Sequence record: MN047793.1
Direction: 5' to 3' (one strand)
Length of the DNA stretch: 64,000 nt
The position numbers and the translations under genes are program-made. Below are positions 1 to 14,830 of this stretch, piece after piece (position 1 is the first letter of the stretch; each line of letters opens with the position of its first letter). The notes beneath the pieces are model-generated. The model was not told the origin of the DNA and searched no databases. It saw only the letters and a program-made list of their open reading frames with translations.

Positions 1-203
1 AGCCTGGGGGTACGGGCTGTTTAGTTTGTAAATAAAAAGTAACTCATTAATATCCCAAACTTGTTTTCAGTGTAGGACAGGGGGGTACCCCTAGGGTATG
101 AGTTGTGGCTACTAGTTAACTGTACGGTGGCATAGTTGGTATCTCTAGTGACTGTGTAGATACTATAGCACCAACGTACTGCGATGTCAACTACTATCTT
201 CTA

Positions 204-292
204 TTGACATTGTGTAGAGTTTATTATAAGATGGATGGGAGGACGGGGATATAGTTAGGGGCTACAATAAACCCCAGCATTGTGCTAGGGTT
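204..292 (+). repeat. Promoter/mini-RNA module copy 1 of 8
   Basis: TTGACA-17-TAAGAT, GGATGGG, AGGACGGGG, then the CCCCAGC..GCTAGGG hairpin. Confidence 0.8.
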
Positions 293-303
293 ATGTGGTA
301 TAC

Positions 304-705
304 TTACGGCAGTGAGTCGATGGCTTTGTTAAACATGTCAACAATGAGTTGAGGGGATTGACGTTTAATATCATTGAATCTGAATATGATATTAGAAGGT
401 GAGCAATAACCGTCATTCACATCACGTGGACTAATGGTATTGGCTAGGGCTTTCACAGCTTCTAACCTATTGAGTGCAGCATAGTTAGTATCAAACGCTA
501 TATAGTTGCCATATTCATCTTCTGGATTAATGACTACCTTACATCCAGCAGCCTTAGCGATATGTCCAAGGGCACAGAAGCATAGGCCACCATCAGCATC
601 AGGGTTACGTGCTACTAGCAACCCTTTCCCTAAGTTGTGAGGATTAGCGAGGATGGCATCACGGGCTTCGGTGAGGATTTGCTTAGTGGTCTTCATAGTA
701 GTCAT
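304..705 (-). CDS. Hypothetical phage protein (CFCALG motif)
   Basis: 133-aa ORF with translational coupling to the upstream gene (TAATG). Confidence 0.75.
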   Translation of the reverse strand: MTTMKTTKQILTEARDAILANPHNLGKGLLVARNPDADGGLCFCALGHIAKAAGCKVVINPEDEYGNYIAFDTNYAALNRLEAVKALANTISPRDVNDGYCSPSNIIFRFNDIKRQSPQLIVDMFNKAIDSLP

Positions 706-869
706 TAACCTAAATCAAGAGCGTTAGAAGTTTTGGTAACCACCGATTCATATACTTGATACGCTTCGGAGTTGTGTTTATTATCCCGTTGCAGCTGAAT
801 CATCCGCGAGCCGACCAGCACAGCAATGGCGTTCAGTTCTTGCTCAGTGAGTTCGATGGTCTTAATCAT
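705..869 (-). CDS. Small hypothetical protein (54 aa, MIKTIELTEQ...)
   Basis: Hand-translated; AGGA RBS; stop overlaps the next start. Confidence 0.6.
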   Translation of the reverse strand: MIKTIELTEQELNAIAVLVGSRMIQLQRDNKHNSEAYQVYESVVTKTSNALDLG

Positions 870-1083
870 AAAAGTCCTGTGCGTAGTATTCTTGTTCGCT
901 CCGCTTATCGGAAGCTGCGTAACGGAATCGGCGGGATGACTGGCGTGTCATCTTGGTGATGTTGGCGGCATCGGATGTGGAGATATTAAGACCACCGACC
1001 ATCGTATACACCTTGGCCTTACGTGACTTAGTAATCTCCTGATACATTTTACGATTGGACTTACGTCGTTCACGATTGGACAT
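862..1083 (-). CDS. Basic hypothetical protein
   Basis: Start moved to MSNRERRK, downstream of the sigma70 promoter at ~1110-1140. Confidence 0.55.
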   Translation of the reverse strand: MSNRERRKSNRKMYQEITKSRKAKVYTMVGGLNISTSDAANITKMTRQSSRRFRYAASDKRSEQEYYAQDFYD

Positions 1084-1144
1084 GATGGTCACGGTGTTTG
1101 GTATGGGTGTATGGTACTTGACTCTATAATTTAAGTCAAGTAGT

Positions 1145-1564
1145 TTAGAGTTTATACCATCCCAATGCATCGAGTGCTTTGGTATTCAGGCCATACTGTT
1201 GAGCCACGTCACGCATGGTTTCATCATATTCTTTTTTGAATGCCTTACCCTTTTCAGGGATAACATTGTCATGTGCATTCTGCAAATCCGCCATAAACTT
1301 ACGATGGGTATTAGGGACCATACCGGATTGAGCTAGTGCACCCCACACGCTATTGCCACCATTTTCCACCTGTCCCATGAGGTCAGCCGACTTACGACCT
1401 TCGTTCGTGAGGAATGGGGCAGCGTTGCAACCTGTGCCACCATACTGGCATGCTCCATTCTTATTGATGGACTGCTTACCAGTGGTTCCGATATGCTTAA
1501 CAGCGGTATCGAAAATGGTCTGTTCACTCATTTGCGAGAAGTTGCGGACAGTGATGAAAGGCAT
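1145..1564 (-). CDS. Hypothetical protein, paralog family A copy 1
   Basis: FDxAVxHIGxTG..CxYxGxGCNAAP..LQxxHD shared with 2692 and 3618 ORFs. Confidence 0.8.
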   Translation of the reverse strand: MPFITVRNFSQMSEQTIFDTAVKHIGTTGKQSINKNGACQYGGTGCNAAPFLTNEGRKSADLMGQVENGGNSVWGALAQSGMVPNTHRKFMADLQNAHDNVIPEKGKAFKKEYDETMRDVAQQYGLNTKALDALGWYKL

Positions 1565-1754
1565 GATGGTTGCTCGATTGATTTTGTGTTATTGTACTAG
1601 TCTTAACTTATAACGTCAAGCGCTTAAGATGTCCCAGTTATAGGCATCCTGCAATTCGAATGCATCCATGGTATCCAGTGCGTCATTAAACTGGTCATGG
1701 GTTGGATTGTTTGCCAACCACTTGGTAAGTTCATCTTTCGACATACGCGAGAAA

Positions 1755-1973
1755 TTAATCACGAAGCCCCCGGATTGCGTCAGGAATTTGTGTAACGGAT
1801 TCATCCAGCTTCAGGAAAAATGCGACAGGATACCTCGCCGCGACAGTGTTGGCGAAATGCTCATCATTGTCGAAACGGTACCACTTATAATCGCTACCTT
1901 GGTAGCACCAGTGGCCTTGTGCATTGGTGTGATGGACGTTGGACGTGTGCAGATGTTGGAAGCGACGAGCCAT
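1755..1973 (-). CDS. Hypothetical protein
   Basis: 72-aa ORF, GAAGGA RBS, own promoter. Confidence 0.6.
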   Translation of the reverse strand: MARRFQHLHTSNVHHTNAQGHWCYQGSDYKWYRFDNDEHFANTVAARYPVAFFLKLDESVTQIPDAIRGLRD

Positions 1974-2026
1974 GTTACCGTTCCTTCAGTGTATGTGTTG
2001 TCAGTATACCACGATTTTACTACTTG

Positions 2027-2293
2027 TCAATATTTCTTGTGGCTTTGTTTGGTATACTTGCGCCAGTTGGGATGCCGGGCTTCGAACGGAGTAAACTCAC
2101 GGGTCACCGGCCCTTCTACCAGCTTGATATGCGCATCACGGAGAATCGTACCGTTGGACTTAATCGAGGCCTTGCCCACGATGGTGACGATGTAGACACG
2201 ACCTTCATACATGCTTTCGAACGTGTCACCGGGCTTCTTTCCGGGATACGTACCGAAAAAGTCAACACTGACGGGTGTGGTATATTCGAGCAT
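2027..2293 (-). CDS. Hypothetical protein
   Basis: GGAG RBS before MLEYTT. Confidence 0.6.
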   Translation of the reverse strand: MLEYTTPVSVDFFGTYPGKKPGDTFESMYEGRVYIVTIVGKASIKSNGTILRDAHIKLVEGPVTREFTPFEARHPNWRKYTKQSHKKY

Positions 2294-2307
2294 GTCTGAG
2301 CACTCCA

Positions 2308-2526
2308 TTATTGTGGAATTCCAACCAAATCAGTGAAGATGTAACGATTGTCCTGTTTCGTCAGTCGCCACAAGACTAGTTGCGGCTGATACGTGTGTAT
2401 GAAATCACGCAATACTTTTTTGTCATATCCGCGATGGACCACCATATGCTCAGTGAGTGCATCAAGGGGTTCGCCCTGTAATGCTTGCTGGTCTTCATCT
2501 TTGTGGACTGCGCAATAGTATTCCAT
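2308..2526 (-). CDS. Hypothetical protein
   Basis: 72-aa ORF with TTGACA-16-TATAAT promoter at 2553-2580. Confidence 0.65.
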   Translation of the reverse strand: MEYYCAVHKDEDQQALQGEPLDALTEHMVVHRGYDKKVLRDFIHTYQPQLVLWRLTKQDNRYIFTDLVGIPQ

Positions 2527-2594
2527 GGGAGTAGTCTTGTTGGTATGTGTAAATTATAGCAGCATAAAAAGTATTGTCAACTATAATTTTGGGG

Positions 2595-2682
2595 TTGACA
2601 TGATCTAAATTATAATGTAAAATGGATGGCAGGACGGGAGAGTACACTGGCCCAAAAAGAAACCCCAGCTTGTGCTAGGGTT
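2595..2682 (+). repeat. Promoter/mini-RNA module copy 2
   Basis: TTGACA-17-TAAAAT GGATGGC AGGACGGGAG, then the hairpin. Confidence 0.85.
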
Positions 2683-2691
2683 TGAGGTGTA

Positions 2692-3072
2692 TTACCATCC
2701 TAGGTTGTCGAGGATGGTACTATCCAGTCCGTAGGTTTTTGCAAGTTTTAGCATTCTACTGTCATAATCACTTTTGAATGTAATGGGGTCTGAGTCATCA
2801 TGTGCAGATTGCAGTTGTTCAATGAATGCAGCATTATTTTTCGGGACATACTTATTTACAGCGAGTTGCGGCCATGAGCCATAGATGTCTGCAAGTTCGC
2901 GCACATCTTCACGCAACAGCGGTGCAGCATTGCAGCCAGACCCACTATACAGACATTTACCAAACGTATTAACCGACTTGACCCCAGTGCTGCCAATATG
3001 CGTGACCGCCATGTCGAAAAGCTTCTGTCTGGTCAGCTTGGAGAATCCGGGAATGGTGAGATAGTTGGGCAT
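2692..3072 (-). CDS. Hypothetical protein, paralog family A copy 2
   Basis: Clear similarity to 1145 and 3618 ORFs. Confidence 0.8.
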   Translation of the reverse strand: MPNYLTIPGFSKLTRQKLFDMAVTHIGSTGVKSVNTFGKCLYSGSGCNAAPLLREDVRELADIYGSWPQLAVNKYVPKNNAAFIEQLQSAHDDSDPITFKSDYDSRMLKLAKTYGLDSTILDNLGW

Positions 3073-3109
3073 AGCTAGTTGTCTTTAAAGGATGAGGGTA
3101 TTATAGCAC

Positions 3110-3553
3110 TTATTCAGGGTCACTGCCATTACATGTTTTGCGAATCAGCAATTCAATTGCCAATTGCATGACCAGTGGCATTGCCTTATATTCCGGACCA
3201 ATAACAGGACAACTGTAGACCAAATCGTATGGTTTGGTGCTATCCACATTATCGATGAAAATCTGGAGACGTGCGCTATTCGTATCCAAGCCTACCGTGT
3301 CATATTGTGCATCCCATGGGAGCATCAAACGCCACCGCAAGCGGGCAGGGTCAATATCCAACAGATAACCAGTTTCATTAATAGCTTTGATGACGGTTGT
3401 CCGCACATAACTATCAATTACCAAATGCGTGAATCCTTCACGCACTAAATCAGCAGGATACTTATGGCTCGAACAATTCGGTGATACTTTACTATGATAC
3501 TTCCATCTATTAGCGCATTTGACGGAAGCCAACAGAAGAGGATACATGGACAT
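3110..3553 (-). CDS. Hypothetical protein
   Basis: 147-aa ORF. Confidence 0.6.
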   Translation of the reverse strand: MSMYPLLLASVKCANRWKYHSKVSPNCSSHKYPADLVREGFTHLVIDSYVRTTVIKAINETGYLLDIDPARLRWRLMLPWDAQYDTVGLDTNSARLQIFIDNVDSTKPYDLVYSCPVIGPEYKAMPLVMQLAIELLIRKTCNGSDPE

Positions 3554-3617
3554 GTTACAATCCTTACGCGTAGGTATTGATGGTGAAGGGTTTGAGGTGT
3601 ATTACCATCCTAGGTGA

Positions 3618-4028
3618 TTATACTTTCCACTTGATACGGAGAGCATCTAGTTCGGTGCTATTGAGGTTGTGGGATTTTGCCAGGGCTTGCATATTAATTA
3701 GATATGCCTTACGGAATGATGCAGTCAAATTGCTTGCATATTTCCCACTATTATCATGTACCTCTTGAAGTTCTACAATAAATTTGACGTTATGTGCAGG
3801 AGCCATATCCTCTCCTACCAATTCAGACCATGAACCATACGCGTCAGCATCCTGTCGCATATCTTCACGCAACATCGGTGCAGCATTGCAGCCAGTCCCA
3901 CTATAGATACACTTACCATGTACATTAACCGACTTGACACCAGTGGTACCAATATGCTTGACTGCCATATCGAACATCTTCTGTTTGGTCAGCTTGGTGA
4001 ATCCGGGGATAGTGATATAGTTAGACAT
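3618..4028 (-). CDS. Hypothetical protein, paralog family A copy 3
   Basis: Start set at MSNYITIPG by alignment with paralogs. Confidence 0.8.
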   Translation of the reverse strand: MSNYITIPGFTKLTKQKMFDMAVKHIGTTGVKSVNVHGKCIYSGTGCNAAPMLREDMRQDADAYGSWSELVGEDMAPAHNVKFIVELQEVHDNSGKYASNLTASFRKAYLINMQALAKSHNLNSTELDALRIKWKV

Positions 4029-4038
4029 GTTGCATGCC

Positions 4039-4263
4039 TTATGCGTAGGTATTGATGGTGAAGGGCTTGATGACATTGACGGGAATGCTGTACACACAGC
4101 CATCGCCGTTCACTTTGAGCATGGGGATATGTTCAACACCAGTGCGGCGAGTATCGGAATGCGACATATCTGCCATCGGATTGTGATTCTTGGATTCAAC
4201 CATCACGGTTCCAGCAGCCAGACCCATACCATCGTGCTTATGAGTCAGAGTGAAAAGTGCCAT
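4039..4263 (-). CDS. Hypothetical protein
   Basis: 74-aa ORF with own promoter and RBS. Confidence 0.65.
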   Translation of the reverse strand: MALFTLTHKHDGMGLAAGTVMVESKNHNPMADMSHSDTRRTGVEHIPMLKVNGDGCVYSIPVNVIKPFTINTYA

Positions 4264-4321
4264 GATGTTGTTCTCTTGTGGTGTGGGTTAATTATAGCAC
4301 CACAAAATGGATTGTCAACAC

Positions 4322-4876
4322 TTATTGTACAGCAATTAGCATTTCTTGCAGTTCACGATTTTCGATGACAGCAGTCAGCTTGTATACACTGAACGTACCA
4401 TCAAAGTGTGCGATGATATCGAACGCTTCACCCTTAGCATTGATGTGGCGGGTTACCTTGGGCGCAGCAGGAGTTTCCGGCTGATTGATATCGTACTGTT
4501 CAGTTTCATCTTTAAGTGAAGTAGAAAACTGATTAATGAAGCTATCTAGCTGTTCCAGAGCATCATCGAAATCGCGTGGAGTAGTGTTAAACAGGTCATC
4601 ACTTCCCGGACCAAAGTAGAAGGGAAGTAATGCCTTAACTTCGAGCCAACGGCCAAACATTGACGCTCTGGCAATTCTATAGATTGATTGTTGCAGTTCA
4701 TCAGGAAGCACACCACCGGCATGAAATGCTCGGTGGATAAAACACCCGGAATTACTAGCATCTTCAGCATCAAACTGAACATTTCCCCCATTGAAATATT
4801 CAGGGTCGATATTATCGGCAAACTTTCGCAGTTTTACCAGATTAGCTAGTTGTTGCTCGGCAGTTAGTGTAGTCAT
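4322..4876 (-). CDS. Hypothetical protein
   Basis: 184-aa ORF. Confidence 0.7.
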   Translation of the reverse strand: MTTLTAEQQLANLVKLRKFADNIDPEYFNGGNVQFDAEDASNSGCFIHRAFHAGGVLPDELQQSIYRIARASMFGRWLEVKALLPFYFGPGSDDLFNTTPRDFDDALEQLDSFINQFSTSLKDETEQYDINQPETPAAPKVTRHINAKGEAFDIIAHFDGTFSVYKLTAVIENRELQEMLIAVQ

Positions 4877-4905
4877 TTTAGTATTCCGTTATAATAGGGA
4901 TTATA

Positions 4906-5352
4906 TCAATTGGTAGTTATATTGCGTAACATTTCCTCTCGCTTACTCAAGTCAATGAGCTTAGCGCTGTACTTTTTAATTTCATTCGCTGCTAACGCCT
5001 GGGCGGTTAGATTCAAGGTATTAATGGCAGTCTTCATATTGTTCATTGCAAGTTCAAGCGACTGCTTAGCGTCATTAATTTCTTGCTCGATACGCGTCAT
5101 ATCATAGTTTACGGATTTGACGGGTGTCGTAACATACTCGATTGTAGCAACCTTGATATCAGTCGCTTGACGATACATGTATTCGATGTCAACACCACAA
5201 ACTGCATGCTCAGCGCTATCAAACAAGTGTGCACGGGTAATGATATCCTGCCAAAACGGATACCCGCCACTACTGGCGTCAATATCAACATACACCACTT
5301 TACCCGCAAAGGGGGCAGAAACACCAATACCCATAACGATAAATTTATTCAT
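4906..5352 (-). CDS. Hypothetical protein with coiled-coil C-terminus
   Basis: GGAG RBS before MNKFIV. Confidence 0.7.
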   Translation of the reverse strand: MNKFIVMGIGVSAPFAGKVVYVDIDASSGGYPFWQDIITRAHLFDSAEHAVCGVDIEYMYRQATDIKVATIEYVTTPVKSVNYDMTRIEQEINDAKQSLELAMNNMKTAINTLNLTAQALAANEIKKYSAKLIDLSKREEMLRNITTN

Positions 5353-5382
5353 GGCGACATGACTCCAATAGTTTATTATAAT

Positions 5383-5418
5383 ATAATAAAAGGCTTGACA
5401 TGTCAAGCCTTTTATTAT
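5383..5418. repeat. 36-bp perfect palindrome (terminator overlapping a -35 box)
   Basis: ATAATAAAAGGCTTGACA|TGTCAAGCCTTTTATTAT. Confidence 0.85.
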
Positions 5419-5802
5419 GTGATGTTGGGTTTACTTGACCAGATACTTCGCGACGGTATCATTTTCAATCGTTTCGAAGATAGCCCAAAATTCTTGAATC
5501 TTGGGCGGGAATGCTCCCGCTGTCGAATGCAGTGACCCCATATCATCCCCCTGCGTTTGATTGGGGGTGTATGCCTTATCACTCAGGACCAATGACGATG
5601 GACCATGTACAGCTTCGAAGGCTTGAATAGCGACCGCATAACGCATCAAACTGGTAATGCAGAAGTTCGTAATCAGAGTGCCACCCCCATAGATATGATT
5701 ATGGTTAAGGTCGGATTCGGTAAGGTGCATGACGTAGGCCAATTGGGTTAGTGTGTGCTCATTATAACGCATCAAAATCAAATGTCAACTATAATTTTGG
5801 GG

Positions 5803-5893
5803 TTGACGTGATCTAAATTATAGTGTAAAATGGATGGCAGGACGGGAGCATAGGCTAACCCAAAATAAAACCCCAGCTGCTACGCCAGGGTTT
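5803..5893 (+). repeat. Promoter/mini-RNA module copy 3
   Basis: TTGACG-17-TAAAAT GGATGGC AGGACGGGAGCATAGGCTAA. Confidence 0.85.
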
Positions 5894-5898
5894 ACATA

Positions 5899-6090
5899 TT
5901 ACTTGGATTGCGGGAAGATGATTGCAGCAGCTTCATTGACACTATTGGCATACCCCAAGACTTGATAGACCTCTTCCCCCTTGGCGTTTTGTGTGGGGTT
6001 CTGGCTGACGTTCCGGATGAGGAAGCCAGGGCTATTCGGGGCATCGATGGACTTGATGACAACGAACCTTGCATATTTCTGCGGCAACAT
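5899..6090 (-). CDS. Hypothetical protein
   Basis: AGGAG RBS before MLPQKY. Confidence 0.65.
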   Translation of the reverse strand: MLPQKYARFVVIKSIDAPNSPGFLIRNVSQNPTQNAKGEEVYQVLGYANSVNEAAAIIFPQSK

Positions 6091-6140
6091 GGCTAACACT
6101 CCTGTGATGTGAGTTAATTATAGCATTCTATTGCTAAATG

Positions 6141-6320
6141 TCAAGAGGCTTTTAGAGATAGTTCGTGTATTTTTGTCTTAGCATCGATAACGCTATTGGC
6201 GTAATCTACCACCTCACTGCCGATAGTTCCATCTGACAACATTGTATGGTCTTCGCCATCATTGTTGGTAAAGTAATACGTCCCTGTTGACAAAACTCGG
6301 ATAATGATGTACGGCGACAT
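6141..6320 (-). CDS. Hypothetical protein
   Basis: Short ORF with upstream promoter. Confidence 0.5.
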   Translation of the reverse strand: MSPYIIIRVLSTGTYYFTNNDGEDHTMLSDGTIGSEVVDYANSVIDAKTKIHELSLKAS

Positions 6321-6534
6321 TACGATTCTCAATTATTAATTAATGTGATTGGCGTTCCTTAGTATGTGATAATCATACTCGATTATAATTTAACTGTCAA
6401 GCATTTGACGCTTGATTTTATTGAGAAAATGTGATCAGGTTCACATTGTCAGGCCCTTGGCTAGGTTAACTGATTCACATAACAGAAAGGCCAGGATTGC
6501 TCCCGGCCCTTGAGTGTGCTATAATTGATGTTAC

Positions 6535-6750
6535 CTATGCCTGAATGGAACGGAAGTATTGACGCAGTTGGGTTTCGACCTGATGCAGGGTGTAGCACAG
6601 CCGTCCCTCAATCTTAACGATGTTGGCCGGGTGCCTATCCATATGCTTTGCACACAGGTCATAACCATATCGCTCATTAATCATTTCATGCCGTTGCAAC
6701 TCTTTACTGTACCGGTTATAACGAATGATGGTGGCAGTACGCTTAGACAT
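6535..6750 (-). CDS. Hypothetical protein
   Basis: AAGGA RBS before MSKRTAT; terminator at ~6485-6512. Confidence 0.6.
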   Translation of the reverse strand: MSKRTATIIRYNRYSKELQRHEMINERYGYDLCAKHMDRHPANIVKIEGRLCYTLHQVETQLRQYFRSIQA

Positions 6751-6775
6751 GCAATTATCCTTGAATATGAACGAC

Positions 6776-7015
6776 TTAGAAGCAGCGGTGTGACTTCGAT
6801 TCAGCGCGCGAACGCTTCCAGCCTTCCAGCGTGTACAGCTTGTTGCGAATGTCGTTTTCCACCAGCACGTATTCAGGACGATATCGCATAGCGAACAAGT
6901 CCCGCAGCATCGTGTAATGCTCAATCAGAATGTCTAAATCGGCATCATTGATGGGGGTAACGGTGGTGTGAAAATCACTGTCGATTTTCTGGAAATGAGC
7001 ATTAGCGTCTTTCAT
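6776..7015 (-). CDS. Hypothetical protein
   Basis: AAGGA RBS before MKDANAH. Confidence 0.6.
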   Translation of the reverse strand: MKDANAHFQKIDSDFHTTVTPINDADLDILIEHYTMLRDLFAMRYRPEYVLVENDIRNKLYTLEGWKRSRAESKSHRCF

Positions 7016-7037
7016 GGCGGTATCCTTGGGATTCGTA

Positions 7038-7346
7038 TTACAGTGCATTTTTAATCAGTCGCATGATTTCGAGTGAATCATTGCGATAGAATTTAACGAA
7101 GTGATGAACCCCATGAACGTCCACGAAAATATAATATGCCGTGGCTTCCGTATCATCTTGCTCATCCCAATCAGCAACCCCAATATTGTCATATGGGATA
7201 ATGAAGTAATCTTCATCTTCACCATCATCAAAATTGAACATAAAACATTCATTCGATGGGACATACGCCACACCAGTAATCGTTCTCCCATTCATAATGA
7301 TGAGAAATTGATTAAACAATTTTAGCACTGCTTCAGCATTGTTCAT
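7038..7346 (-). CDS. Acidic hypothetical protein
   Basis: AGGA RBS before MNNAEAV. Confidence 0.65.
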   Translation of the reverse strand: MNNAEAVLKLFNQFLIIMNGRTITGVAYVPSNECFMFNFDDGEDEDYFIIPYDNIGVADWDEQDDTEATAYYIFVDVHGVHHFVKFYRNDSLEIMRLIKNAL

Positions 7347-7518
7347 ATTAGCTGTCCTGCTTGTTGCGATGTTTGGCATTACGCTTATAATCATTCTTAC
7401 GGTCACGATGGGTCGCGGCCTTGTTGAATTTGTGTGCGTGCTTGGCGACCGGGTTATTCATGACACTCTCCGTGGTTGATGTGTGTCATTATACTTATAA
7501 TTTACCAGTTGTCAAGCA

Positions 7519-7896
7519 CTATTTGTTAGCATTAATGATTTTTACGGCCAGACTTTCAAAGTCATCAAAGAAGCTACGAACCTCGCTGAGTCCAGCACTA
7601 TGACCACGTTCATATGCAATATCCATTACAATGGCATAGGTAACATCATTGAGGGTCATATTTTGCTTACGATGCAGCGCATTCCACCGTTCGATAATAT
7701 CATTACGACGGTTGCGAGCCTCAACACACGCAGCCTCAAATTCGGCCATTTGCGCTTCATATTTACGCATTTTTACGGCAAGGTCTTCAGCGTCTTTTGA
7801 CGTGGTGATGAGAGTAGATGGACGTTTAGGGCGAGAAACTGCGGCAGTATCGCGTTGCCGCAATTCAGCTTCCAGAGATTCCAAAGTGTCATTCAT
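7519..7896 (-). CDS. Coiled-coil hypothetical protein
   Basis: AAGGA RBS before MNDTLES. Confidence 0.65.
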   Translation of the reverse strand: MNDTLESLEAELRQRDTAAVSRPKRPSTLITTSKDAEDLAVKMRKYEAQMAEFEAACVEARNRRNDIIERWNALHRKQNMTLNDVTYAIVMDIAYERGHSAGLSEVRSFFDDFESLAVKIINANK

Positions 7897-7898
7897 TA

Positions 7899-8060
7899 TC
7901 ACTTTCCTTGATTGAGGGCAAAAAGGGTGAGGGTACCGACGAACCACAACAGCGAGATAAATGCCCAGCTGGTCACCTTGGGAAACCTGCAACCATTGTT
8001 ATTAGCTTCACGCAGGGTCAGGATGACAAGAATGAGGCTGATAAGGTTCCAGAGAAGCAT
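7899..8060 (-). CDS. Small two-TM membrane protein (53 aa)
   Basis: Hand-translated MLLWNLISLILVILTL...WAFISLLWFVGTLTLFALNQGK; own promoter. Confidence 0.6.
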   Translation of the reverse strand: MLLWNLISLILVILTLREANNNGCRFPKVTSWAFISLLWFVGTLTLFALNQGK

Positions 8061-8290
8061 GGTGGTGTGTCCGTTGTTGGTATGTGTTAATTATACTGGA
8101 TCACACTACGATGTCAAGCACTTTTTGCAAATAAAAATGCCGGCTAATATAGCCGGCATTGTGTCTATAGAGTAAGATAAGTATGTTCATGTTACATGAC
8201 TCTAACCCCCTCAATTGAAATTGCTCAGGTTTATGGGAATGTACCCGCCTCAAGAAACATTAGATTACGATGGTGAGTCTAGTTTGTCAA

Positions 8291-8557
8291 CTACTTTTTA
8301 GCGTTCTGTGCTTCGTCTGCGAGGAATGCTGCACGACGCAACTCATTGTAATTTTCCGGGATATCAATGAACGGTACGATTTTGTCAATTTTCGCCCATG
8401 CATTGATAGAATGTGCACACGGCCTGCAATAATATGCTTGGGTCTCGCGGTTATAGCAGAATGCCGTGTTAGGAGCCTGACACTGTGTGCGGTTGCAACT
8501 GCCACCTTTCTTGCCCTTGTCGTCACGAATGGTCTTGGCATGTGGATTGGTAAGCAT
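8291..8557 (-). CDS. Cys-rich zinc-finger-like hypothetical protein
   Basis: CNRTQC...YYCRPC. Confidence 0.65.
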   Translation of the reverse strand: MLTNPHAKTIRDDKGKKGGSCNRTQCQAPNTAFCYNRETQAYYCRPCAHSINAWAKIDKIVPFIDIPENYNELRRAAFLADEAQNAKK

Positions 8558-8595
8558 GGTGGCAATTCCTTGTGGTGTGTTAATTATAGCGCTTA

Positions 8596-8967
8596 TTATG
8601 CAAGCGGTCTCGAATTCATGCATTGTACAGCAGTCGCAGAAATAACCAAATCAATCACTTGAGTGATGTCGCTAGCCACTCCAATATGGGTTTCCAACGA
8701 CACCACGAACGTACCGCCATCACCCGGAGTCACCACGAAACGATTACCATTCGGCAGCGTATGATAGCTCGGAGAAAGTTTAGCTTCTTGCCGTACACTA
8801 TCGCGATAAGCCTCTACCACGTCTTTTACTTCTTTCAAGCTACGACCATGCAATTCAGCACGAAGTGACTTGATAGCCGGAACCATGTGGTTATTGCGAG
8901 CGTACAGCTTCCATTGAGCACTGCTAGTAAATGAATTGATGATATCAGTGATGTCAGTCGGATTCAT
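8596..8967 (-). CDS. Protein with a ribosomal L7/L12 C-terminal-like motif
   Basis: VPAIKSLRAELHGRSLKEVKDVVE resembles the bL12 CTD pattern AIKxxRxxTGxGLKEAKxxVE. Confidence 0.5.
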   Translation of the reverse strand: MNPTDITDIINSFTSSAQWKLYARNNHMVPAIKSLRAELHGRSLKEVKDVVEAYRDSVRQEAKLSPSYHTLPNGNRFVVTPGDGGTFVVSLETHIGVASDITQVIDLVISATAVQCMNSRPLA

Positions 8968-9029
8968 GATAATGTCCTTGTTAGTTTGTGTGTTAATTAT
9001 AACACTACAAATCGTAATGTCAACACATA

Positions 9030-9416
9030 TTATGAAAAATGTGCAGCGCGCGCCATACGCGATTCACTTGCACGATTCCAGTATGTGTCTTTACAATTCG
9101 CCCGGCCCTTGTTAGAACAGAATGCCTGCTGATACGACTTCTTAACGAATGACTTGCCACACGCAGGACATGTGCAGGTTGCACCAGTCTTTGCAGCCTT
9201 GCTCGCCTCGTACACACTCAGGGCATGGATTTTGGCGATGGTTGCAGCAGCTGGACGTTGTGACGTTGGTCGTAGGGAATCCACCGACCGCGAAGTTAAT
9301 GAGCCACATCGGCCATAGACATAAACGAATTCACCCGGACCATCGTGAGAAAATTCGTCATCATCGTCCATATTGTCAGAAAAGGCTTGGCCTTCAGTTC
9401 CGTCCCACTCACGCAT
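9030..9416 (-). CDS. Zinc-finger-containing hypothetical protein
   Basis: CPACGKSF..FCSNKGRANC; AAGGAG RBS. Confidence 0.7.
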   Translation of the reverse strand: MREWDGTEGQAFSDNMDDDDEFSHDGPGEFVYVYGRCGSLTSRSVDSLRPTSQRPAAATIAKIHALSVYEASKAAKTGATCTCPACGKSFVKKSYQQAFCSNKGRANCKDTYWNRASESRMARAAHFS

Positions 9417-9437
9417 AACATTCTCCTTACATGTGTG

Positions 9438-9857
9438 TTACATCATAGATTGTGGCATTGCTTTTGTCAACAGCCGACTAACTGAAATCTTCTTGAACGA
9501 TGTTGCGTCAGCTGGTATAAACGCCACCTGTGTGCCCGACTTGCCAAACTTCACTAAGTCAGCATCAATCGTATAGGCATAGATGTGCATATTCATGCTT
9601 TGCAGCACTTCCACCGTCTCACGACTGGGGAACCAGTGACGAAGTTGACGGATACTTTCGGTCCCGCAGCAATATTGCCTATTCTTATTACCTAATCCTC
9701 CCATTTCTAGACCAACATCACGGCCAATCAGTGGATGATACTTAAGGTCAGGAATGGAAGATGTCAGCACCATACGAACCTCATCTGGTGTTGAGCCATC
9801 ACGAAACGGACCAACATTATTATCGTTTTGAACTCGATAGATGGTGATGGTGTTCAT
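9438..9857 (-). CDS. Hypothetical phage protein
   Basis: IYRVQN..GPF..CGTES..QLRHWF. Confidence 0.65.
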   Translation of the reverse strand: MNTITIYRVQNDNNVGPFRDGSTPDEVRMVLTSSIPDLKYHPLIGRDVGLEMGGLGNKNRQYCCGTESIRQLRHWFPSRETVEVLQSMNMHIYAYTIDADLVKFGKSGTQVAFIPADATSFKKISVSRLLTKAMPQSMM

Positions 9858-9984
9858 GATACATACTCGGTGGGTATGTGTGTAACTATACACTATAATT
9901 TTATGTTGTCAACTATTATTTTCATCTTGACAAATAAAAAAGCCCCAGCGATGCTAGGGCTTCTTACGCAATACCGGTATCGGT

Positions 9985-10257
9985 TTACTTGCGGGTGATG
10001 GCGAAGTTCAGCGGGCCGACCTTGCCCGACACGTCACTGGCGGTCTTGGGCAGCTTCAGGCCAGCACCGACCTTCAGCGAGGAACGCACACGGTCTGCGT
10101 TGATGCGAGCGGTGGCCTTGGGCGAACGATACAGACCATTACGCACCGGCTTGGCGAGCGATTCAGCCAGATTGTACGCGGCGGTCTTAACCACTTCCTT
10201 GGCAGCGGCGAACGAAGTGGTGTCGGTGGACTTGTTGTTGATGGTCACGTCGTACAT
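9985..10257 (-). CDS. Basic hypothetical protein
   Basis: AAGGA RBS, own promoter, downstream terminator. Confidence 0.7.
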   Translation of the reverse strand: MYDVTINNKSTDTTSFAAAKEVVKTAAYNLAESLAKPVRNGLYRSPKATARINADRVRSSLKVGAGLKLPKTASDVSGKVGPLNFAITRK

Positions 10258-10277
10258 GGGTGTATCCTTTGTTGGTT

Positions 10278-10317
10278 GGTGTGTGGTTAGTATACAGCGT
10301 TAAATCGTATTGTCAAC
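10278..10317 (-). promoter_or_regulatory. Shared early promoter cassette type C (second copy 16699-16738)
   Basis: 40-bp near-identical repeat containing TTGACA-16-TATACT. Confidence 0.75.
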
Positions 10318-10325
10318 TACTTTTT

Positions 10326-10520
10326 TCAAAAACTTCCTGCGTTTTCTGCAACGATTGTCTGCAACCGGGTCAAATATTCTTCAGCCAAGGCTTCTGCTTC
10401 AGCCTGACTCATTGCCTGACGGTAGTAATGCACTACCATCTGACGAATTGTTGGCTCAGGACCATCTTTGATAGGAACGCTAGGGAATTGAACCGAAACA
10501 TCGGCGAACGGGATAAACAT
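10326..10520 (-). CDS. Hypothetical protein
   Basis: 64-aa ORF. Confidence 0.6.
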   Translation of the reverse strand: MFIPFADVSVQFPSVPIKDGPEPTIRQMVVHYYRQAMSQAEAEALAEEYLTRLQTIVAENAGSF

Positions 10521-10523
10521 GGT

Positions 10524-10616
10524 TTAGGCTTCCTCAATGGAGCCGAATTCTTCGTCATCACCAAAATACTGGTCAGCGAAGTCGTTGGCGTCAAAGCTGA
10601 ATTCATTCTCATCCAT
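10524..10616 (-). CDS. Highly acidic 30-aa micro-protein
   Basis: MDENEFSFDANDFADQYFGDDEEFGSIEEA; AAGGA RBS; promoter cassette upstream. Confidence 0.6.
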   Translation of the reverse strand: MDENEFSFDANDFADQYFGDDEEFGSIEEA

Positions 10617-10637
10617 GGTGCAGTTCCTTTGATTGGT

Positions 10638-10678
10638 GGTGTGAGTGCTATTCTACACGACTAAATTATAAAGTCAAC
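10638..10678 (-). promoter_or_regulatory. Shared early promoter cassette type A (copies 11107-11147, 14499-14539)
   Basis: 41-bp repeat TTGACT-16-TAGAAT followed by the CACTCACACC leader. Confidence 0.8.
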
Positions 10679-10682
10679 TGTT

Positions 10683-11087
10683 TTATTCAAAATAATTGCG
10701 CGAAAGTGAATGGGGACCAAATTCGATATCCGGGACAATCACGCGAGCCGCTGCATCTTCACCAAATGCATCATAAAGCCCCACACCGTGACCCATGGCC
10801 TGCATTGCCAGATAGTGGCCGAACATCGCAGCAGTCGGTTCACGGTCACCAGCAGCAACCTGTTGAATTTCGGTCAGCAATTCAACAGGTTGCTGCAAAT
10901 TCTTCTGAAAAATTGTATCAAGCAAATCATCGGCGGCAGCCAACGCTTCAGAATCAATTTCATCCGGAAGCTGATTCATAATCTCACCATGCATCGGCTG
11001 TTCAGCCTCATCCGCTTGATCCGCGAAAGCCGAACCAAAGAATGCCAGTGCAGCATGCTTACGAATTTCATCACGGATGGTATTCAT
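10683..11087 (-). CDS. Hypothetical protein
   Basis: 134-aa ORF behind a promoter cassette. Confidence 0.75.
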   Translation of the reverse strand: MNTIRDEIRKHAALAFFGSAFADQADEAEQPMHGEIMNQLPDEIDSEALAAADDLLDTIFQKNLQQPVELLTEIQQVAAGDREPTAAMFGHYLAMQAMGHGVGLYDAFGEDAAARVIVPDIEFGPHSLSRNYFE

Positions 11088-11142
11088 CGGTTCGGCCTTG
11101 TTAGTTGGTGTGAGTGCTATTCTACACGATTAAATTATAAAG

Positions 11143-11361
11143 TCAACCAATAATTCTAGTCGTATGTGAGAAATACGTCAGATAAATGGTGTCAAAATAG
11201 TCTTCCACTTCCTGTTCAGTTTTCAACGCAACGATTTCAGCGTACTGTTTATGGGTAGATGGTATGGTGACCATATCACCCGACACCATGCCGATACGAA
11301 CAGACCCATCATCACAATGCATGGTGAAGTAATCAGCACCACTTACAATCATTTTCGACAT
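11143..11361 (-). CDS. Hypothetical protein
   Basis: 72-aa ORF, AGGA RBS. Confidence 0.65.
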   Translation of the reverse strand: MSKMIVSGADYFTMHCDDGSVRIGMVSGDMVTIPSTHKQYAEIVALKTEQEVEDYFDTIYLTYFSHTTRIIG

Positions 11362-11375
11362 AGTGTTATCCTGTA

Positions 11376-11618
11376 CTATCTGAGCGAGCCAATGCCATAC
11401 ATCTGAATGAAATTCGTCATCACGTCACGGTCATTCAGAATCTCATAATCCGTGAACGTATCGGCAAAACAGAACGTCAATTCCTTTTCACGATTCACAT
11501 GAATGGTGGAGGTGAATGCAACACGCTTAGACTCGGTTTCAGGTTCGTGAGTGATTTTGACCGTGTGCCAATGCATCAACTGAAACTTGCCGAGGTGGGT
11601 ATAGGTGTTGGTGCTCAT
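11376..11618 (-). CDS. Hypothetical protein
   Basis: 80-aa ORF ending in TAG. Confidence 0.65.
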   Translation of the reverse strand: MSTNTYTHLGKFQLMHWHTVKITHEPETESKRVAFTSTIHVNREKELTFCFADTFTDYEILNDRDVMTNFIQMYGIGSLR

Positions 11619-11685
11619 CGCGTCATTCCCTGTTGTGTGTGCTCATTATAGCTGATCGAAACGCAATGTCAACTATAATTTAGTG

Positions 11686-11773
11686 TTGACAGGACCTAAA
11701 TTATAGTGTAAAATGGATGGCAGGACGGGAGCATAGGCTAAGCCTAAAGAAAACCCCAGCTTGCGCTAGGGTC
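11686..11773 (+). repeat. Promoter/mini-RNA module copy 4
   Basis: TTGACA-17-TAAAAT GGATGGC AGGACGGGAGCATAGGCTAAGCCTA, then the hairpin. Confidence 0.85.
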
Positions 11774-11787
11774 TTCAGTGGGATAGA

Positions 11788-11961
11788 TTACTTTGCAGCC
11801 AATACGATGTCCATTATTTCATCGGAAGCAACATTTTGTGCAGATGCCGCCCCCTTTCTATATGCGTCTGCATGTTCGTGGTCATTCATGTCGGCTTGAG
11901 TACGCTTTTTGATAACCCATGCTTCCAGCATTTCAACGATTTGTTCAGCAGACAGATTCAT
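11788..11961 (-). CDS. Small hypothetical protein (57 aa)
   Basis: Hand-translated MNLSAEQIVEMLEAW... Confidence 0.55.
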   Translation of the reverse strand: MNLSAEQIVEMLEAWVIKKRTQADMNDHEHADAYRKGAASAQNVASDEIMDIVLAAK

Positions 11962-11995
11962 ATGATATTCCGGTATATGAGGAGAAGGAAACTAC

Positions 11996-12289
11996 TTAGA
12001 CGACAGGCTTGAGCGTTTCGCCTTCAGCAATCAGGCCGGCTTCCTGCATTTTGGTGAACAGGGATTGCAGTGCCGCGTTGCGAGCCTTGACGGTCATACG
12101 GCCCGGAATGTCTTCCTTCACTGTCCGATTGGAAAACATTTCAAACGTGAAGGATTGAAACTTGGAATCAACGTTTTCCAGTTCCCCCTCACATGCGAAG
12201 GCATAGCCCGGACGGCCTTGCGGCTTATAGGTGTAAAGGTTCCAATGCTTGTTCTCGGCAGTGGACTTGACGTACTGGGAATCGCTCAT
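11996..12289 (-). CDS. Hypothetical protein
   Basis: 97-aa ORF with own promoter. Confidence 0.7.
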   Translation of the reverse strand: MSDSQYVKSTAENKHWNLYTYKPQGRPGYAFACEGELENVDSKFQSFTFEMFSNRTVKEDIPGRMTVKARNAALQSLFTKMQEAGLIAEGETLKPVV

Positions 12290-12358
12290 TGTTGTGGCCT
12301 TGTTTGTTGTGGTGTGAGTTAATTATAGCAGGTTAAATCGTACTGTCAACACTTATTT

Positions 12359-12889
12359 TCAACGTATGCCGTAATCGTATGCGACCAATTTACCCTTGCG
12401 ATTGTAGCCGACTTGTGCACAATCGACATAACCCACCCAATCCGGTAGAACCTCATAAGGCTCATCCGTGGACTTCACTTGTTCCATGAACAGAATTGGA
12501 GTCTTTTCAAAGTAGGCCAGACGGGTTCTAGCATACTGTACGTTATCAGGGTTATAATCCGGTTCGTCTTCCTTTGCGTTGGAAATACTGCCCTCCCAAT
12601 CGTTATCTGCGTGACCATCCCAGCTAATAGGGAATTTGATAACGTATGGCCCCATCAATAGAACGACACGATTGCGACCATTCGTGACGCCTGAAGCACG
12701 CTTAAAATACTGAACGAATTTGCTTGCGACTTTGGGACCACAACACCCTTTAATAAACTCAACACATTTTTTCATAGTCTCCAGCGTATTGGATTCTACG
12801 GAGTACCATTCTCCAGAATCTGCACGGCCTTGCACCATGTAATGTTGAATCGGGAATTTGTATTGGCGACGGCAACCAATCTTGTGCAT
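12359..12889 (-). CDS. Putative protein-kinase-like (APH/STK fold) protein
   Basis: GRNRVVL..YVIKFP, NxWE, ILFMEQV, DCAQVGY..GKLVAYDYG (DFG-like DYG). Confidence 0.55.
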   Translation of the reverse strand: MHKIGCRRQYKFPIQHYMVQGRADSGEWYSVESNTLETMKKCVEFIKGCCGPKVASKFVQYFKRASGVTNGRNRVVLLMGPYVIKFPISWDGHADNDWEGSISNAKEDEPDYNPDNVQYARTRLAYFEKTPILFMEQVKSTDEPYEVLPDWVGYVDCAQVGYNRKGKLVAYDYGIR

Positions 12890-13127
12890 GGTCAATTCCT
12901 TAATGAACCGACTTAATCTTGCGGGTCGAATATCCACACGACATGGCAAAGGTTTTGGCTTCGCTGTAGCTGGTGAAATACTTCGTAAGTGTGGGACCGC
13001 AGACGATTTTGTACATGGCTGGCTCCGTTGGTATGTGTGTAGTATACACCATCAAAATCACTTGTCAATAAAAAATCCCACTATTTCTAGTGGGATTTTG
13101 TGTTAGTCTATTGGAATCCTGAACAGA

Positions 13128-13880
13128 TTAACCGTTCAGGATGTCGGCCGGAATCCCTGCGACATCTTCCGGCAAATACGACTTGCGGGAGACAATCAGA
13201 CGCTCAAAATTGTCTTCCTTCAGGGAAAGCGCCTTCAGGCTGACAGACTTGGAATTCAGGACCTTGGCGATGCAGTTAGACATGAGCACCGGGGCACCAG
13301 ACTTCACCACCTTATATTCACCCGGAACGCGAACAGTCTTGTTCAGTTCCAGAATGGTGACCATGATGCTATCCACGGTCGGCAGACCATCGGTCAACAC
13401 CGGTTCCTTATGTTCGCCCACCTTTTCCGTGACGTAATGCACCCGGATACCATCGGCCATCTTGGCATAGCAGCGGTCATGTGCGGCACGGTGTGCATCG
13501 CTGCGGTCGGTGCTGGTAAGGGTCTTAGTCATGCTGGCGACTTCTTCAGCCTTGCGAGTATTGAACAAGGCCATTGCTTCGACTTCGGACAGCTTAGACA
13601 GAATGGGGTCCTTTTCCACATGCTCGCGAATGTCCGAAAACTTGATGTCGGACAATGCAGCGACCTTGCGCTGATACAGGCGTTCGGTGCTGAAGCGAGT
13701 CAGAACCTGCATATCTTGCACCGGACTCTTACCGGCAACATAGCCGCTGGTCGGACGATAGCCGTAAACCGTGGCAATACCACCAGCACGGGCTTCAGTC
13801 AGCGAGGCGATGGCTTCAGCCTGCGATTCCGTGGCGCGAAACTTGGTGCCGTTCAGGTCGGTGAGGATGACAAATGACAT
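13128..13880 (-). CDS. Hypothetical protein (250 aa)
   Basis: Long ORF, AGGA RBS, terminator at ~13072-13100. Confidence 0.8.
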   Translation of the reverse strand: MSFVILTDLNGTKFRATESQAEAIASLTEARAGGIATVYGYRPTSGYVAGKSPVQDMQVLTRFSTERLYQRKVAALSDIKFSDIREHVEKDPILSKLSEVEAMALFNTRKAEEVASMTKTLTSTDRSDAHRAAHDRCYAKMADGIRVHYVTEKVGEHKEPVLTDGLPTVDSIMVTILELNKTVRVPGEYKVVKSGAPVLMSNCIAKVLNSKSVSLKALSLKEDNFERLIVSRKSYLPEDVAGIPADILNG

Positions 13881-13945
13881 TGCGATTCCTAGTTAGTGTG
13901 TATGGGTGTCATTATACAGGATAAAACGATGTTGTCAACACCTAA

Positions 13946-14092
13946 TTAGGTGAAATGCGTCACCAATCGATAGATTCCCCAAATGATAGTACCCACGAAG
14001 GCAATACCCAACACACCCACAAACAACATCCACAACACCATCAACAATTCAACGACGGTATAGCCTTTCTGATACTTACGCATGCTTTTCAT
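13946..14092 (-). CDS. Type IV pilin-like micro-protein with prepilin cleavage motif (48 aa)
   Basis: MKSMRKYQKG|YTVVELLMVLWMLFVGVLGIAFVGTIIWGIYRLVTHFT; AGGA RBS; basic leader, G-1, E+5, hydrophobic helix. Confidence 0.75.
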   Translation of the reverse strand: MKSMRKYQKGYTVVELLMVLWMLFVGVLGIAFVGTIIWGIYRLVTHFT

Positions 14093-14133
14093 GTATAGTT
14101 CCTAGTTAGTGAAAATTATTGTGTACCGGTGTG

Positions 14134-14481: not shown

Positions 14482-14541
14482 TGGATAATCTCTGTGTTGG
14501 TGTGAGTGCTATTCTACACGACTAAATTATAAAGTCAACCC

Positions 14542-14757: not shown

Positions 14758-14830
14758 CTGAATGCCCCTAATTGTCTTAGTGTGTGGGCATTATAACGCA
14801 TCAAAATCAAATGTCAACTATAATTTAGTG

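Follow-up and report, generated by a model that had tools for sequence, protein, structure and literature searches.

A conserved class of predicted host-type early promoter, mostly inverted against its neighbouring genes, in the early region of Xanthomonas phage Xoo-sp13

A repeated predicted promoter module in the early region of Xoo-sp13

The first 64,000 nucleotides (nt) of the genome of Xanthomonas phage Xoo-sp13 (nt 1-64000 of MN047793.1, 309,023 bp), which are the whole of the stretch analysed here and are referred to as the window, contain eight copies of a 50-bp module, five on the plus strand and three on the minus strand, which was confirmed as a distinct and previously undescribed class of predicted host-type early promoter. 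This class, termed class A, differs from the ordinary (class B) promoters of the region in that only its members are conserved in the spacer and in the initial transcribed sequence, the latter through ATA at +12 to +14, and in that most of its copies point against the local genes.

The module consists of a TTGACA-like -35 hexamer, 17 bp, TAAAAT or TAAGAT, and then GGATGG(C/G)AGG(A/C)CGGG. A search of the window with the pattern TAARATGGATGGSAGGMCGGG, in which up to three mismatches were allowed, gave eight matches, every one of them with no mismatch at all, where about 0.01 would be expected by chance. The 21-nt core so defined starts at 227, 2618, 5826, 11709 and 14854 on the plus strand, and spans 18497-18517, 21225-21245 and 58459-58479 on the minus strand. 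Among the eight copies the -35 hexamer is TTGACA (four copies), TTGACG (one) or TTGCAT (three); the spacer is invariably 17 bp; and the -10 hexamer is TAAAAT except in a single copy with TAAGAT. An earlier, sequence-only reading of this DNA had listed eight copies with -35 elements at 204, 2595, 5803, 11686 and 14831 on the plus strand and at 18540, 21268 and 58502 on the minus strand, together with these hexamer variants and the exact spacer, and in all of this it was correct. The copies, which are named hereafter by the position of the -35 element, are as follows.

204-253, plus strand: class A module, antisense; the most divergent copy, TTGACA-17-TAAGAT-GGATGGGAGGACGGGG; nhmmer E = 3e-8
2594-2644, plus strand: class A module, antisense; -35 at 2595; presumed start A2631
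5802-5852, plus strand: class A module, antisense; -35 TTGACG at 5803; presumed start A5839
11685-11735, plus strand: class A module, antisense; -35 at 11686; presumed start A11722
14830-14880, plus strand: class A module, antisense; -35 at 14831; faces the 3' end of Xoosp13_35 (DUF7717)
18491-18540, minus strand: class A module, sense; AGGCCGGG variant, -35 TTGCAT
21219-21268, minus strand: class A module, sense; located where leftward and rightward genes diverge
58453-58502, minus strand: class A module, sense; immediately upstream of Xoosp13_117 (annotated ATG 58457)

A profile hidden Markov model built from 55 copies returned the same eight sites in the window and no others, the next match having E = 1.5. 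When the whole genome was scanned in pieces with this profile, two extra copies were found, at about 64796 (plus strand) and about 71177 (minus strand), so that the earlier count of eight is right for the window but has to be raised to ten for the genome. All ten fall within 204-71177, and the profile scan revealed none between 71.2 and 309 kb. BLAST under-counts the modules, finding eight in Xoo-sp13 and missing both of the extra copies.

Numbered from an invariant A, which is the probable start of transcription, the conserved unit spans -36 to +14. The starts so predicted are at or near 240, 2631, 5839, 11722 and 14867 on the plus strand and 18504, 21232 and 58466 on the minus strand. The fixed portion of the spacer is its proximal half, TAAATTATAGTG. 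The -10 hexamer is followed by a G-rich discriminator, GGATGGC, so that GGATGG would lie upstream of the start, and then by the invariant A and the predicted initial transcript AGGMCGGGRnnAUA. The search for copies relied on the 21 positions of the core, so that unbiased evidence of conservation comes solely from the spacer and from positions beyond +8; these still carry about 1-1.5 bits each. The tetranucleotide ATAG occurs twice, about 30 bp apart, at -7 to -3 and at +23 to +27 from the first T of the -10 hexamer.

The match to the sigma-70 consensus is 10-11 out of 12 positions, with a 17-bp spacer and with the -35 element and TAnnnT -10 element that are typical of such promoters, which bears out the earlier description of the module as near-consensus. 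Given this match, and given that three of the copies are sited where gene promoters belong, the module is very probably a promoter for the host sigma-70 polymerase. Three other interpretations of its anatomy were discarded. An alternative -10 element, TATAGT, within the spacer would leave only 10 bp to the conserved -35; a mini open reading frame (ORF) starting from the ATG inside TAAAATGG lies upstream of the likely start, and has an in-frame stop in only about half of the copies; and a G-quadruplex is unlikely in RNA form, the four G-tracts being invariant but two of them being upstream of the start.

Among the annotated products of Xoo-sp13, where most genes are listed as hypothetical proteins, a T4-type late sigma factor is the only one related to transcription, and none is a subunit of RNA polymerase. 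For this reason early transcription is expected to be by the host sigma-70 polymerase, on which Xoo-sp13 probably depends. Near-consensus sigma-70 promoters occur at a density of 9.5 per 10 kb in the window versus 0.6-3.2 elsewhere in the genome, which places the module within a promoter-dense early region. Genes in this part of the genome run leftward from 0.3 to 21.2 kb, rightward from 21.3 to 57.5 kb, and leftward again up to 71 kb.

Over its first 20 kb the window has 100% identity to nt 1-20000 of Xoo-sp13, and it shows DNA similarity there to one other phage alone, XacN1, only in short patches, which are the module copies themselves. XacN1 has been described as a jumbo myovirus of 384,670 bp, placed near Rak2-like and T4-like phages, with direct terminal repeats of 65,875 bp that house small genes and most of the tRNA genes; the paper describing it makes no mention of promoters, nor of the class A module. 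The length of the Xoo-sp13 record is close to the non-redundant length of XacN1, and the two are colinear from 7 to 24 kb, which allows the window to be identified as the equivalent of the XacN1 terminal repeat; positions 1-6.5 kb of the window have no homology to XacN1.

Orientation relative to ordinary promoters

To define class B, the window and the XacN1 repeat were scanned for TTGAC(A/T/G), a spacer of 16-17 bp, and a -10 hexamer matching TATAAT at five or more positions, without the downstream sequence of the module. This yielded 105 promoters in the two early regions, about 57 of the ordinary type being in the window. Not one of the 105 is antisense, all being co-oriented with the local genes, whereas 12 of 20 class A copies are antisense (five of eight in the window and seven of 12 in XacN1; Fisher's exact p = 7e-12). 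By the annotation, all five plus-strand copies of the window lie among minus-strand genes, as the sequence-only reading had proposed. Class B promoters show no conserved spacer, and their leader is only weakly CA-rich.

A promoter-like site at 54038-54066 on the minus strand (TTGACA-17-TAATAT, matching the consensus at 10 of 12 positions) lies within the rightward gene block, where it faces a terminator at 53983-54013 (plus strand) and stands back-to-back with a gene promoter at 54080-54108 (plus strand). It is the only other antisense promoter-like site with this layout, its downstream sequence differs from that of the module, and it may be due to chance or may be a second case of the same architecture.

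Genomic contexts of the module

The module is found in three contexts. In the inverted context there follow in order a minus-strand gene, its terminator hairpin, the module aimed into that hairpin, and the back-to-back class B promoter of the next gene. In the tandem context (copies 18540 and 21268) the order is terminator, module, some 50-75 nt with an A/T-rich stretch, class B promoter, and gene. In the direct context (copy 58502) the module lies immediately upstream of a gene, a layout that recurs in XacN1 and in metagenomic contigs L012, L014 and L018.

The sense copies, three of the eight in the window, are predicted to be ordinary upstream gene promoters. Copy 18540 is located after a minus-strand terminator at 18623-18594 and about 75 nt upstream of the class B promoter 18443-18416 and gene Xoosp13_45 (ATG 18383); copy 21268 is upstream of the class B promoter 21180-21152 and an unannotated ORF, 20876-21193 (likely ATG 21127). 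In copy 58502 the start of Xoosp13_117 follows the first T of the -10 hexamer at a distance of 22 nt and is itself preceded, at five nt, by AGGA; the transcribed AGGACGGGG is predicted to serve as the ribosome-binding region of the gene. The earlier statement that the transcript leads to no pair of ribosome-binding site and start codon is therefore in keeping with the inverted copies but fails for the three on the minus strand, of which 58502 leads directly to Xoosp13_117 while 18540 and 21268 lead to genes by way of a second promoter.

The hairpins faced by the five inverted copies, and the class B promoters that stand back-to-back with them, are as follows.

269-292, minus strand: hairpin faced by copy 204, with its base at +30; G-U pairing on the minus strand
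2660-2683, minus strand: intrinsic terminator faced by copy 2595 at +30; ends the upstream minus-strand operon
5868-5893, minus strand: terminator faced by copy 5803 at +30; two minus-strand G-U pairs are mismatches on the plus strand
11751-11772, minus strand: hairpin faced by copy 11686 at +30
14897-14924, minus strand: terminator faced by copy 14831 at +31
2553-2580, minus strand: class B promoter, TTGACA-16-TATAAT, back-to-back with copy 2595; drives genes
162-190, 5761-5788, 11645-11672 and 14790-14817, minus strand: class B promoters, back-to-back partners of copies 204, 5803, 11686 and 14831, respectively

The distance from module to hairpin is nearly fixed. Counted from the invariant A, the base of the hairpin is at +30 or +31 in all five inverted copies of the window, and across all relatives 16 of the 19 copies scored have the start of the GC core between +27 and +36. 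The predicted convergent transcript would therefore overlap the facing mRNA at its 3' end; at copy 2595, for example, the terminator 2660-2683 ends 8 nt past the stop of Xoosp13_7, so that the stop of the facing gene is 8 nt beyond the hairpin. The distance to the other neighbour is not fixed: at one orthologous locus (DUF7717) the -35 elements of the module and its back-to-back promoter are anywhere from 4 to 26 bp apart, so that the module is not a position-dependent activator site for the partner promoter.

The proposal that the facing hairpins are built for the opposite strand is supported. A terminator scanner called 2660-2683, 5868-5893 and 14897-14924 on the minus strand, and none of the five facing hairpins on the plus strand; read in the plus direction, the G-U pairs of the minus strand become C-A mismatches, and only three U follow. 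Across the family the hairpin is more stable on the gene strand (for example, -25.6 versus -17.0 and -24.4 versus -16.4 kcal/mol). In several relatives U-runs flank the hairpin on both sides, and this makes a short terminated RNA plausible in those phages. The terminators at 269-292, 2660-2683, 5868-5893, 9937-9965, 11751-11772 and 14897-14924 also constitute a repeat family of their own (AAACCCYAGC, loop, GCTGGGGTTT), which the G-U pairs on the gene strand would render one-directional.

No paralogy was found among the genes that the modules face, and only one orthologous pair of such genes is shared between Xoo-sp13 and XacN1. The leftmost class B promoter, 162-190, is aimed at the start of the record, some 150 nt to its left, with no gene between; were the repeat also present on the right, or the genome joined as a concatemer, transcription from it would reach the minus-strand genes at 304-308 kb, which suggests that the Xoo-sp13 record begins at a repeat boundary.

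Conservation in related phages

XacN1 has 12 modules per terminal repeat of about 66 kb. A single pattern scan of metagenomes gave 24 loci, with several contigs bearing 2-5 copies each; in all, over 20 metagenomic contigs carry the module. In total, 55 distinct copies were collected from metagenomes, from XacN1, and from two contigs binned as an Anaerolinea metagenome-assembled genome (L034 and L037); in these last the modules have a phage-type context, and the contigs are taken as mis-binned phage DNA. In the 80 kb of Stenotrophomonas phage RAS14 that were examined there are four profile matches, of which two are antisense, each facing a hairpin, and two are co-oriented with downstream genes, one in tandem upstream of another promoter and the other directly upstream of an apparent homologue of Xoosp13_117. 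The records of Xoo-sp13, XacN1 and RAS14 carry no annotation at the module sites.

One antisense copy, the one aimed at the 3' end of the DUF7717 gene, has kept its locus in five phages, namely Xoo-sp13, XacN1, RAS14 and two from metagenomes; the adjacent protein is just 48-57% identical (48% for the RAS14 homologue of Xoosp13_35). Between orthologous copies the transcript differs freely past +14, the linker being unconserved. The antisense copies are thus old, positionally stable and under constraint. The view that conservation of the module reflects selection gains support, since it extends to relatives (XacN1, RAS14 and those from metagenomes) in which the flanking DNA shows no similarity.

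The AGGA named in the heading of the sequence-only reading is specific to the Xoo-sp13 lineage, and is replaced by AGGC in 44 of 54 distinct copies. In relatives a T/G split at one -35 position suggests spacers of two lengths, 17 bp (about 36 distinct copies) and 16 bp (about 18); these figures are read from the split and not counted directly.

No copy of the module was found in Xanthomonas or other host-like genomes in a collection of species-representative genomes, where the only matches were the Anaerolinea-binned contigs and one unrelated family; the idea that the module mimics a host promoter or leader was rejected accordingly. Across all scans three unrelated families turned up, at or below chance level. 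Among the matches is an exact 21-mer, TAAAATGGATGGCAGGACGGG, followed by CAGG, that is conserved in prophages of Bacillaceae type (Thalassobacillus, Virgibacillus and others; L004-L007, L009, L035, L036 and L038). Despite the identical 21-mer a link to the phage module was judged to be coincidence, because the identity ends exactly at the edges of the search pattern and because unrelated families were no more frequent than chance allows. In those prophages the TAAAATGGATGGCAGGACGGG element lies between a sigma/ArpU-like late regulator gene, whose stop it closely follows, and the terminase genes downstream; its flanks are otherwise diverged, its GGACG appears to be paired with a downstream complement, and it looks like an undescribed late-operon leader.

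A possible role in cis at operon boundaries

How the inverted copies might act is much less certain than their anatomy. Our preferred reading, which we advance tentatively and at rather less than an even chance, is that class A is a special host-sigma-70 early promoter, portable at operon boundaries, whose inverted copies act in cis on the neighbouring operons. The phage would use the module as a portable transcription unit at such boundaries. A co-directional copy would provide genes with an extra upstream promoter, and from an inverted copy a non-coding transcript would run, after 30 nt, into the previous operon's terminator.

Transcripts of the upstream operon are predicted to end in a U-tract which, in the numbering of the module, occupies about +18 to +26. 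The open complex of RNA polymerase extends to about +20, and an elongating polymerase covers some 18 bp ahead of its active site. The U-tract would thus be at the edge of a polymerase bound at the module and well within the reach of a terminating polymerase, so that the two polymerases could hardly ignore each other. A polymerase bound at or leaving the module would occupy the DNA at which upstream transcripts end, and might shield the next promoter from read-through; the module and the facing operon would then interfere with one another mutually. The upstream early mRNA would also have, for its 3' hairpin and 3' end, a perfect complement in the short transcript, which could tune the stability of that mRNA, as 3'-overlapping antisense RNAs do elsewhere.

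An action in cis explains why the inverted copies are oriented as they are, why they hold a fixed position at terminators, why the body of the transcript drifts freely, and why synteny is conserved. Of the roles put forward by the sequence-only reading, antisense regulator and insulator are viable, and they are close to this explanation. A sink for RNA polymerase is implausible with 10-24 sites per genome.

Several points weigh against the cis reading. It rests on promoter activity, start site and RNA ends that are predicted from sequence, and transcript length and every functional consequence are inferred in turn. On its own it leaves the strict conservation of the spacer and of +1 to +14 unexplained, and to explain it one has to call on a bound regulator or on selection for the strength of the promoter or for escape from it. 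Between 1 and 21 kb, about nine terminators lie on the minus strand and three of them lack a module, so that the module is not a general requirement for termination. The tight spacing to the hairpin could merely reflect compaction of the genome. Finally, the five antisense cassettes of Xoo-sp13 share linker sequence, which implies that gene conversion contributes to the similarity within this genome.

Alternative explanations

It might instead be proposed that each inverted copy is the gene for a small RNA of 50-65 nt that acts in trans, either on host RNAs or by titrating Hfq, RsmA/CsrA or 30S/S1, and that begins with 14 shared nt, rich in G and similar to a Shine-Dalgarno sequence, continues with an A-rich linker and ends in a terminator hairpin. 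The conservation of +1 to +14 while the remaining transcript drifts is what such a family would show; this segment is not consistently paired, as is typical for the seed of an Hfq-type small RNA. The multiple sibling copies, the module-side U-runs in several relatives, the near-constant GGA (within GGGA or GGGGA) and an A-rich run similar to ARN repeats are all in its favour. Against this, the hairpins of Xoo-sp13 are poor terminators in the direction of the module, with their C-A mismatches and a tail of no more than three U; the A-run is dictated by the opposite strand's U-tract; most relatives have AGGC in place of AGGA; and the identical 5' sequence also heads ordinary mRNAs. At the level of the product, no module matched Rfam at the gathering threshold or at E of 1 or below, and there is no conserved fold that presents the motif: a conserved 5' hairpin was rejected as a defining feature (folding energy of the first 32 nt no different from that of shuffles, p = 0.16), pairing of the G-run being only slightly raised (3.85 versus 3.37 nt in shuffles). 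Complements of the 5' sequence in the phage genome, modules excluded, are at chance level (about 14 windows versus 9.5 in shuffles). We consider a trans-acting RNA unlikely. Titration of CsrA/RsmA in particular, as suggested by the sequence-only reading, is poorly supported: RNAs of the CsrB and RsmY/Z type bear many GGA motifs, mostly in hairpin loops, whereas the predicted module transcript has one or two with no conserved hairpin to present them, and GGATGG lies ahead of the likely start.

It is distinctly unlikely, in our view, that class A is a separately regulated class, in which the fixed spacer and +1 to +14 are either the operator for a regulator, encoded by phage or host, or a core sensitive to supercoiling or ppGpp, so that class A is timed apart from class B and the inverted copies shut early operons on schedule by convergent transcription. 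Such a scheme has the merit of explaining why conservation in the spacer and on both sides of the start exceeds what polymerase reads. It could also draw on the recurrence of ATAG, the G/C-rich discriminator, and the presence of a GTP pyrophosphokinase gene in the XacN1 terminal repeat and of MazG in Xoo-sp13; but no regulator was identified, the module lacks dyad symmetry, and the -35, spacer length and -10 suffice for unaided initiation. In a related proposal, to which we give no greater credence, the inverted modules would be non-coding promoters of either a 'motor' type, for T7-style entry of a 380-kb genome from its left end, or a 'switch' type, for scheduled convergent shut-off. If this were true, selection would be on the act of transcription and not on its product.

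A recombination cassette without any function of its product, akin to the T4 PeSL elements discussed below, would provide patches of homology for the shuffling of small genes, with inverted copies as by-products of inversion. PeSLs are documented to act in this way (PMC2839356, PMC4122927); the cassettes here do flank small genes of unknown function; and the window is unrelated to XacN1 at 1-6.5 kb while colinear with it at 7-24 kb. This explanation is nevertheless improbable, in that inverted copies are conserved as well as direct ones, and that one of them has kept its locus in five phages despite the divergence of the adjacent protein to 48-57% identity. Moreover, with none of 105 ordinary promoters inverted, inversions must be rare or selected against unless the module is involved.

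Transcription-assisted DNA entry of the T7 kind, in which rightward non-coding promoters let the host polymerase reel in DNA from the left end across regions whose genes are directed outward, would fit the fact that every inverted copy in Xoo-sp13 points rightward (204, 2595, 5803, 11686, 14831 and 64796). Such copies occur only where genes run leftward, the block from 21 to 57 kb having rightward promoters of its own and no module; the first is 204 nt from the start of a record that is colinear with the left end of the mapped XacN1 terminal repeat; and the terminators stop rightward transcription poorly. In XacN1, however, the first rightward copy is only at 3268, with none near the left end. 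Leftward copies make up four of ten in Xoo-sp13 and five of 12 in XacN1, and a leftward promoter that is not a module (54066-54038) also faces a terminator. There are in addition so few terminator slots in the rightward block that the absence of modules from it, and hence the polarity, is not significant. We consider this explanation very improbable. The least credible is an R-loop replication origin of the T4 oriF/oriG type (a promoter, a G-rich hybridised initial RNA and an A/T-rich downstream segment): the transcript start is G-rich and followed by an A-rich run, and the phage has T4-like replication genes, but 10-12 dispersed copies are far more than the known origins of T4, the A-run is explained by the terminator of the other strand, and there is no skew signal beyond the one that tracks gene orientation.

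Relation to described systems

The nearest described elements are, in our rating, the PeSL (promoter-early stem-loop) cassettes of T4-type phages, in which a stem-loop ends the upstream transcript and a promoter drives the next gene co-directionally (Arbiol et al. 2010, PMC2839356; Comeau et al. 2014, PMC4122927). Like them, the module is part of a repeated intergenic unit that combines a consensus sigma-70 early promoter with a G/C stem-loop terminator, in a T4-related phage that probably uses host polymerase early; and it is likewise concentrated where small genes of unknown function are shuffled, to judge from the lack of XacN1 homology at 1-6.5 kb as against the colinear 7-24 kb. The co-directional layout is seen in the units of class B promoter and terminator and in the three sense modules, but not in the inverted ones. 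We do not count the module as a PeSL because it is mostly inverted relative to the stem-loop (five of eight copies), firing into it with no coding transcript; it also constitutes a second promoter class, with its conserved spacer and initial transcribed sequence.

Cis-antisense RNAs that overlap their target at the 3' end and share a bidirectional terminator with it are familiar from type I toxin-antitoxin pairs such as txpA/RatA, bsrG/SR4 and par RNA I/RNA II. A convergent promoter, and a short RNA overlapping the terminator and 3' end of the facing mRNA, are features predicted here too. The genes facing the module are, however, mutually unrelated, with toxicity shown for none of them; the overlap may consist of the hairpin alone; and the same promoter unit also drives ordinary genes.

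The late promoter PR' of phage lambda, with its qut site, is used together with the Q antiterminator. It resembles the module in that sequence is conserved both between the -35 and -10 elements and in the early part of the transcribed region, and in that a terminator follows at a short distance. The module differs in lacking a -10-like pause element in its transcribed part, nnATA at +10 to +14 being without the necessary T at the last hexamer position in most copies; the modules are also many and dispersed, with no genes downstream in the antisense direction.

Host-takeover modules situated in terminal repeats include the region of the SPO1 early promoters PE1-PE12 and the pre-early region of T5. 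The terminal repeat examined here is similarly crowded with short operons, each made up of small genes and provided with predicted very strong promoters of the host type. To our knowledge, no conserved antisense promoter class has been described in the SPO1 and T5 modules. Host-takeover modules of this kind are cited in the paper describing XacN1.

The transcription signals of jumbo-phage early regions are almost unstudied, and the rule that emerges here is a clean one: ordinary promoters all follow the genes, and one conserved class is exempt, mostly pointing the opposite way. The module is a small and defined element (50 bp, ten copies, one of them at the same locus in five phages) with which to study non-coding convergent transcription in host-takeover operons. 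It is also a source of predicted very strong, compact promoters for Xanthomonas and Stenotrophomonas, and of one-directional terminators, for use in constructs, and it improves the annotation of Xoo-sp13, XacN1 and RAS14.

Other features of the region

The rightward block contains 26 tRNA genes on the plus strand, between 32648 and 52917 of the window. They include a suppressor-type tRNA with anticodon CTA at 36791-36866 (plus strand), which ARAGORN labels Pyl, and, at 33820-33915 (plus strand), a call of tRNA-Tyr(ATA) that is unusually long. In an ORF-poor gap among these genes, 39030-39373 (plus strand) matches the permuted transfer-messenger RNA (tmRNA) family RF04321 of Rfam with 65.7 bits against a gathering score of 47, a match that ARAGORN did not report; at the corresponding place XacN1 has an unannotated gap, 36.6-39.0 kb.

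Two minus-strand ORFs, 20502-20879 and 20876-21193, are absent from the GenBank annotation, and the former is homologous to the XacN1 HNH endonuclease ORF062. A 48-residue ORF at 13946-14092 is annotated as 'major head protein', which looks like an annotation error, the real capsid gene being at 169.7 kb. An annotated homologue of the T5 A1 protein, which in T5 is required for second-step DNA transfer, is encoded at 158858-160558 of Xoo-sp13, in mid-genome and outside the terminal-repeat region.

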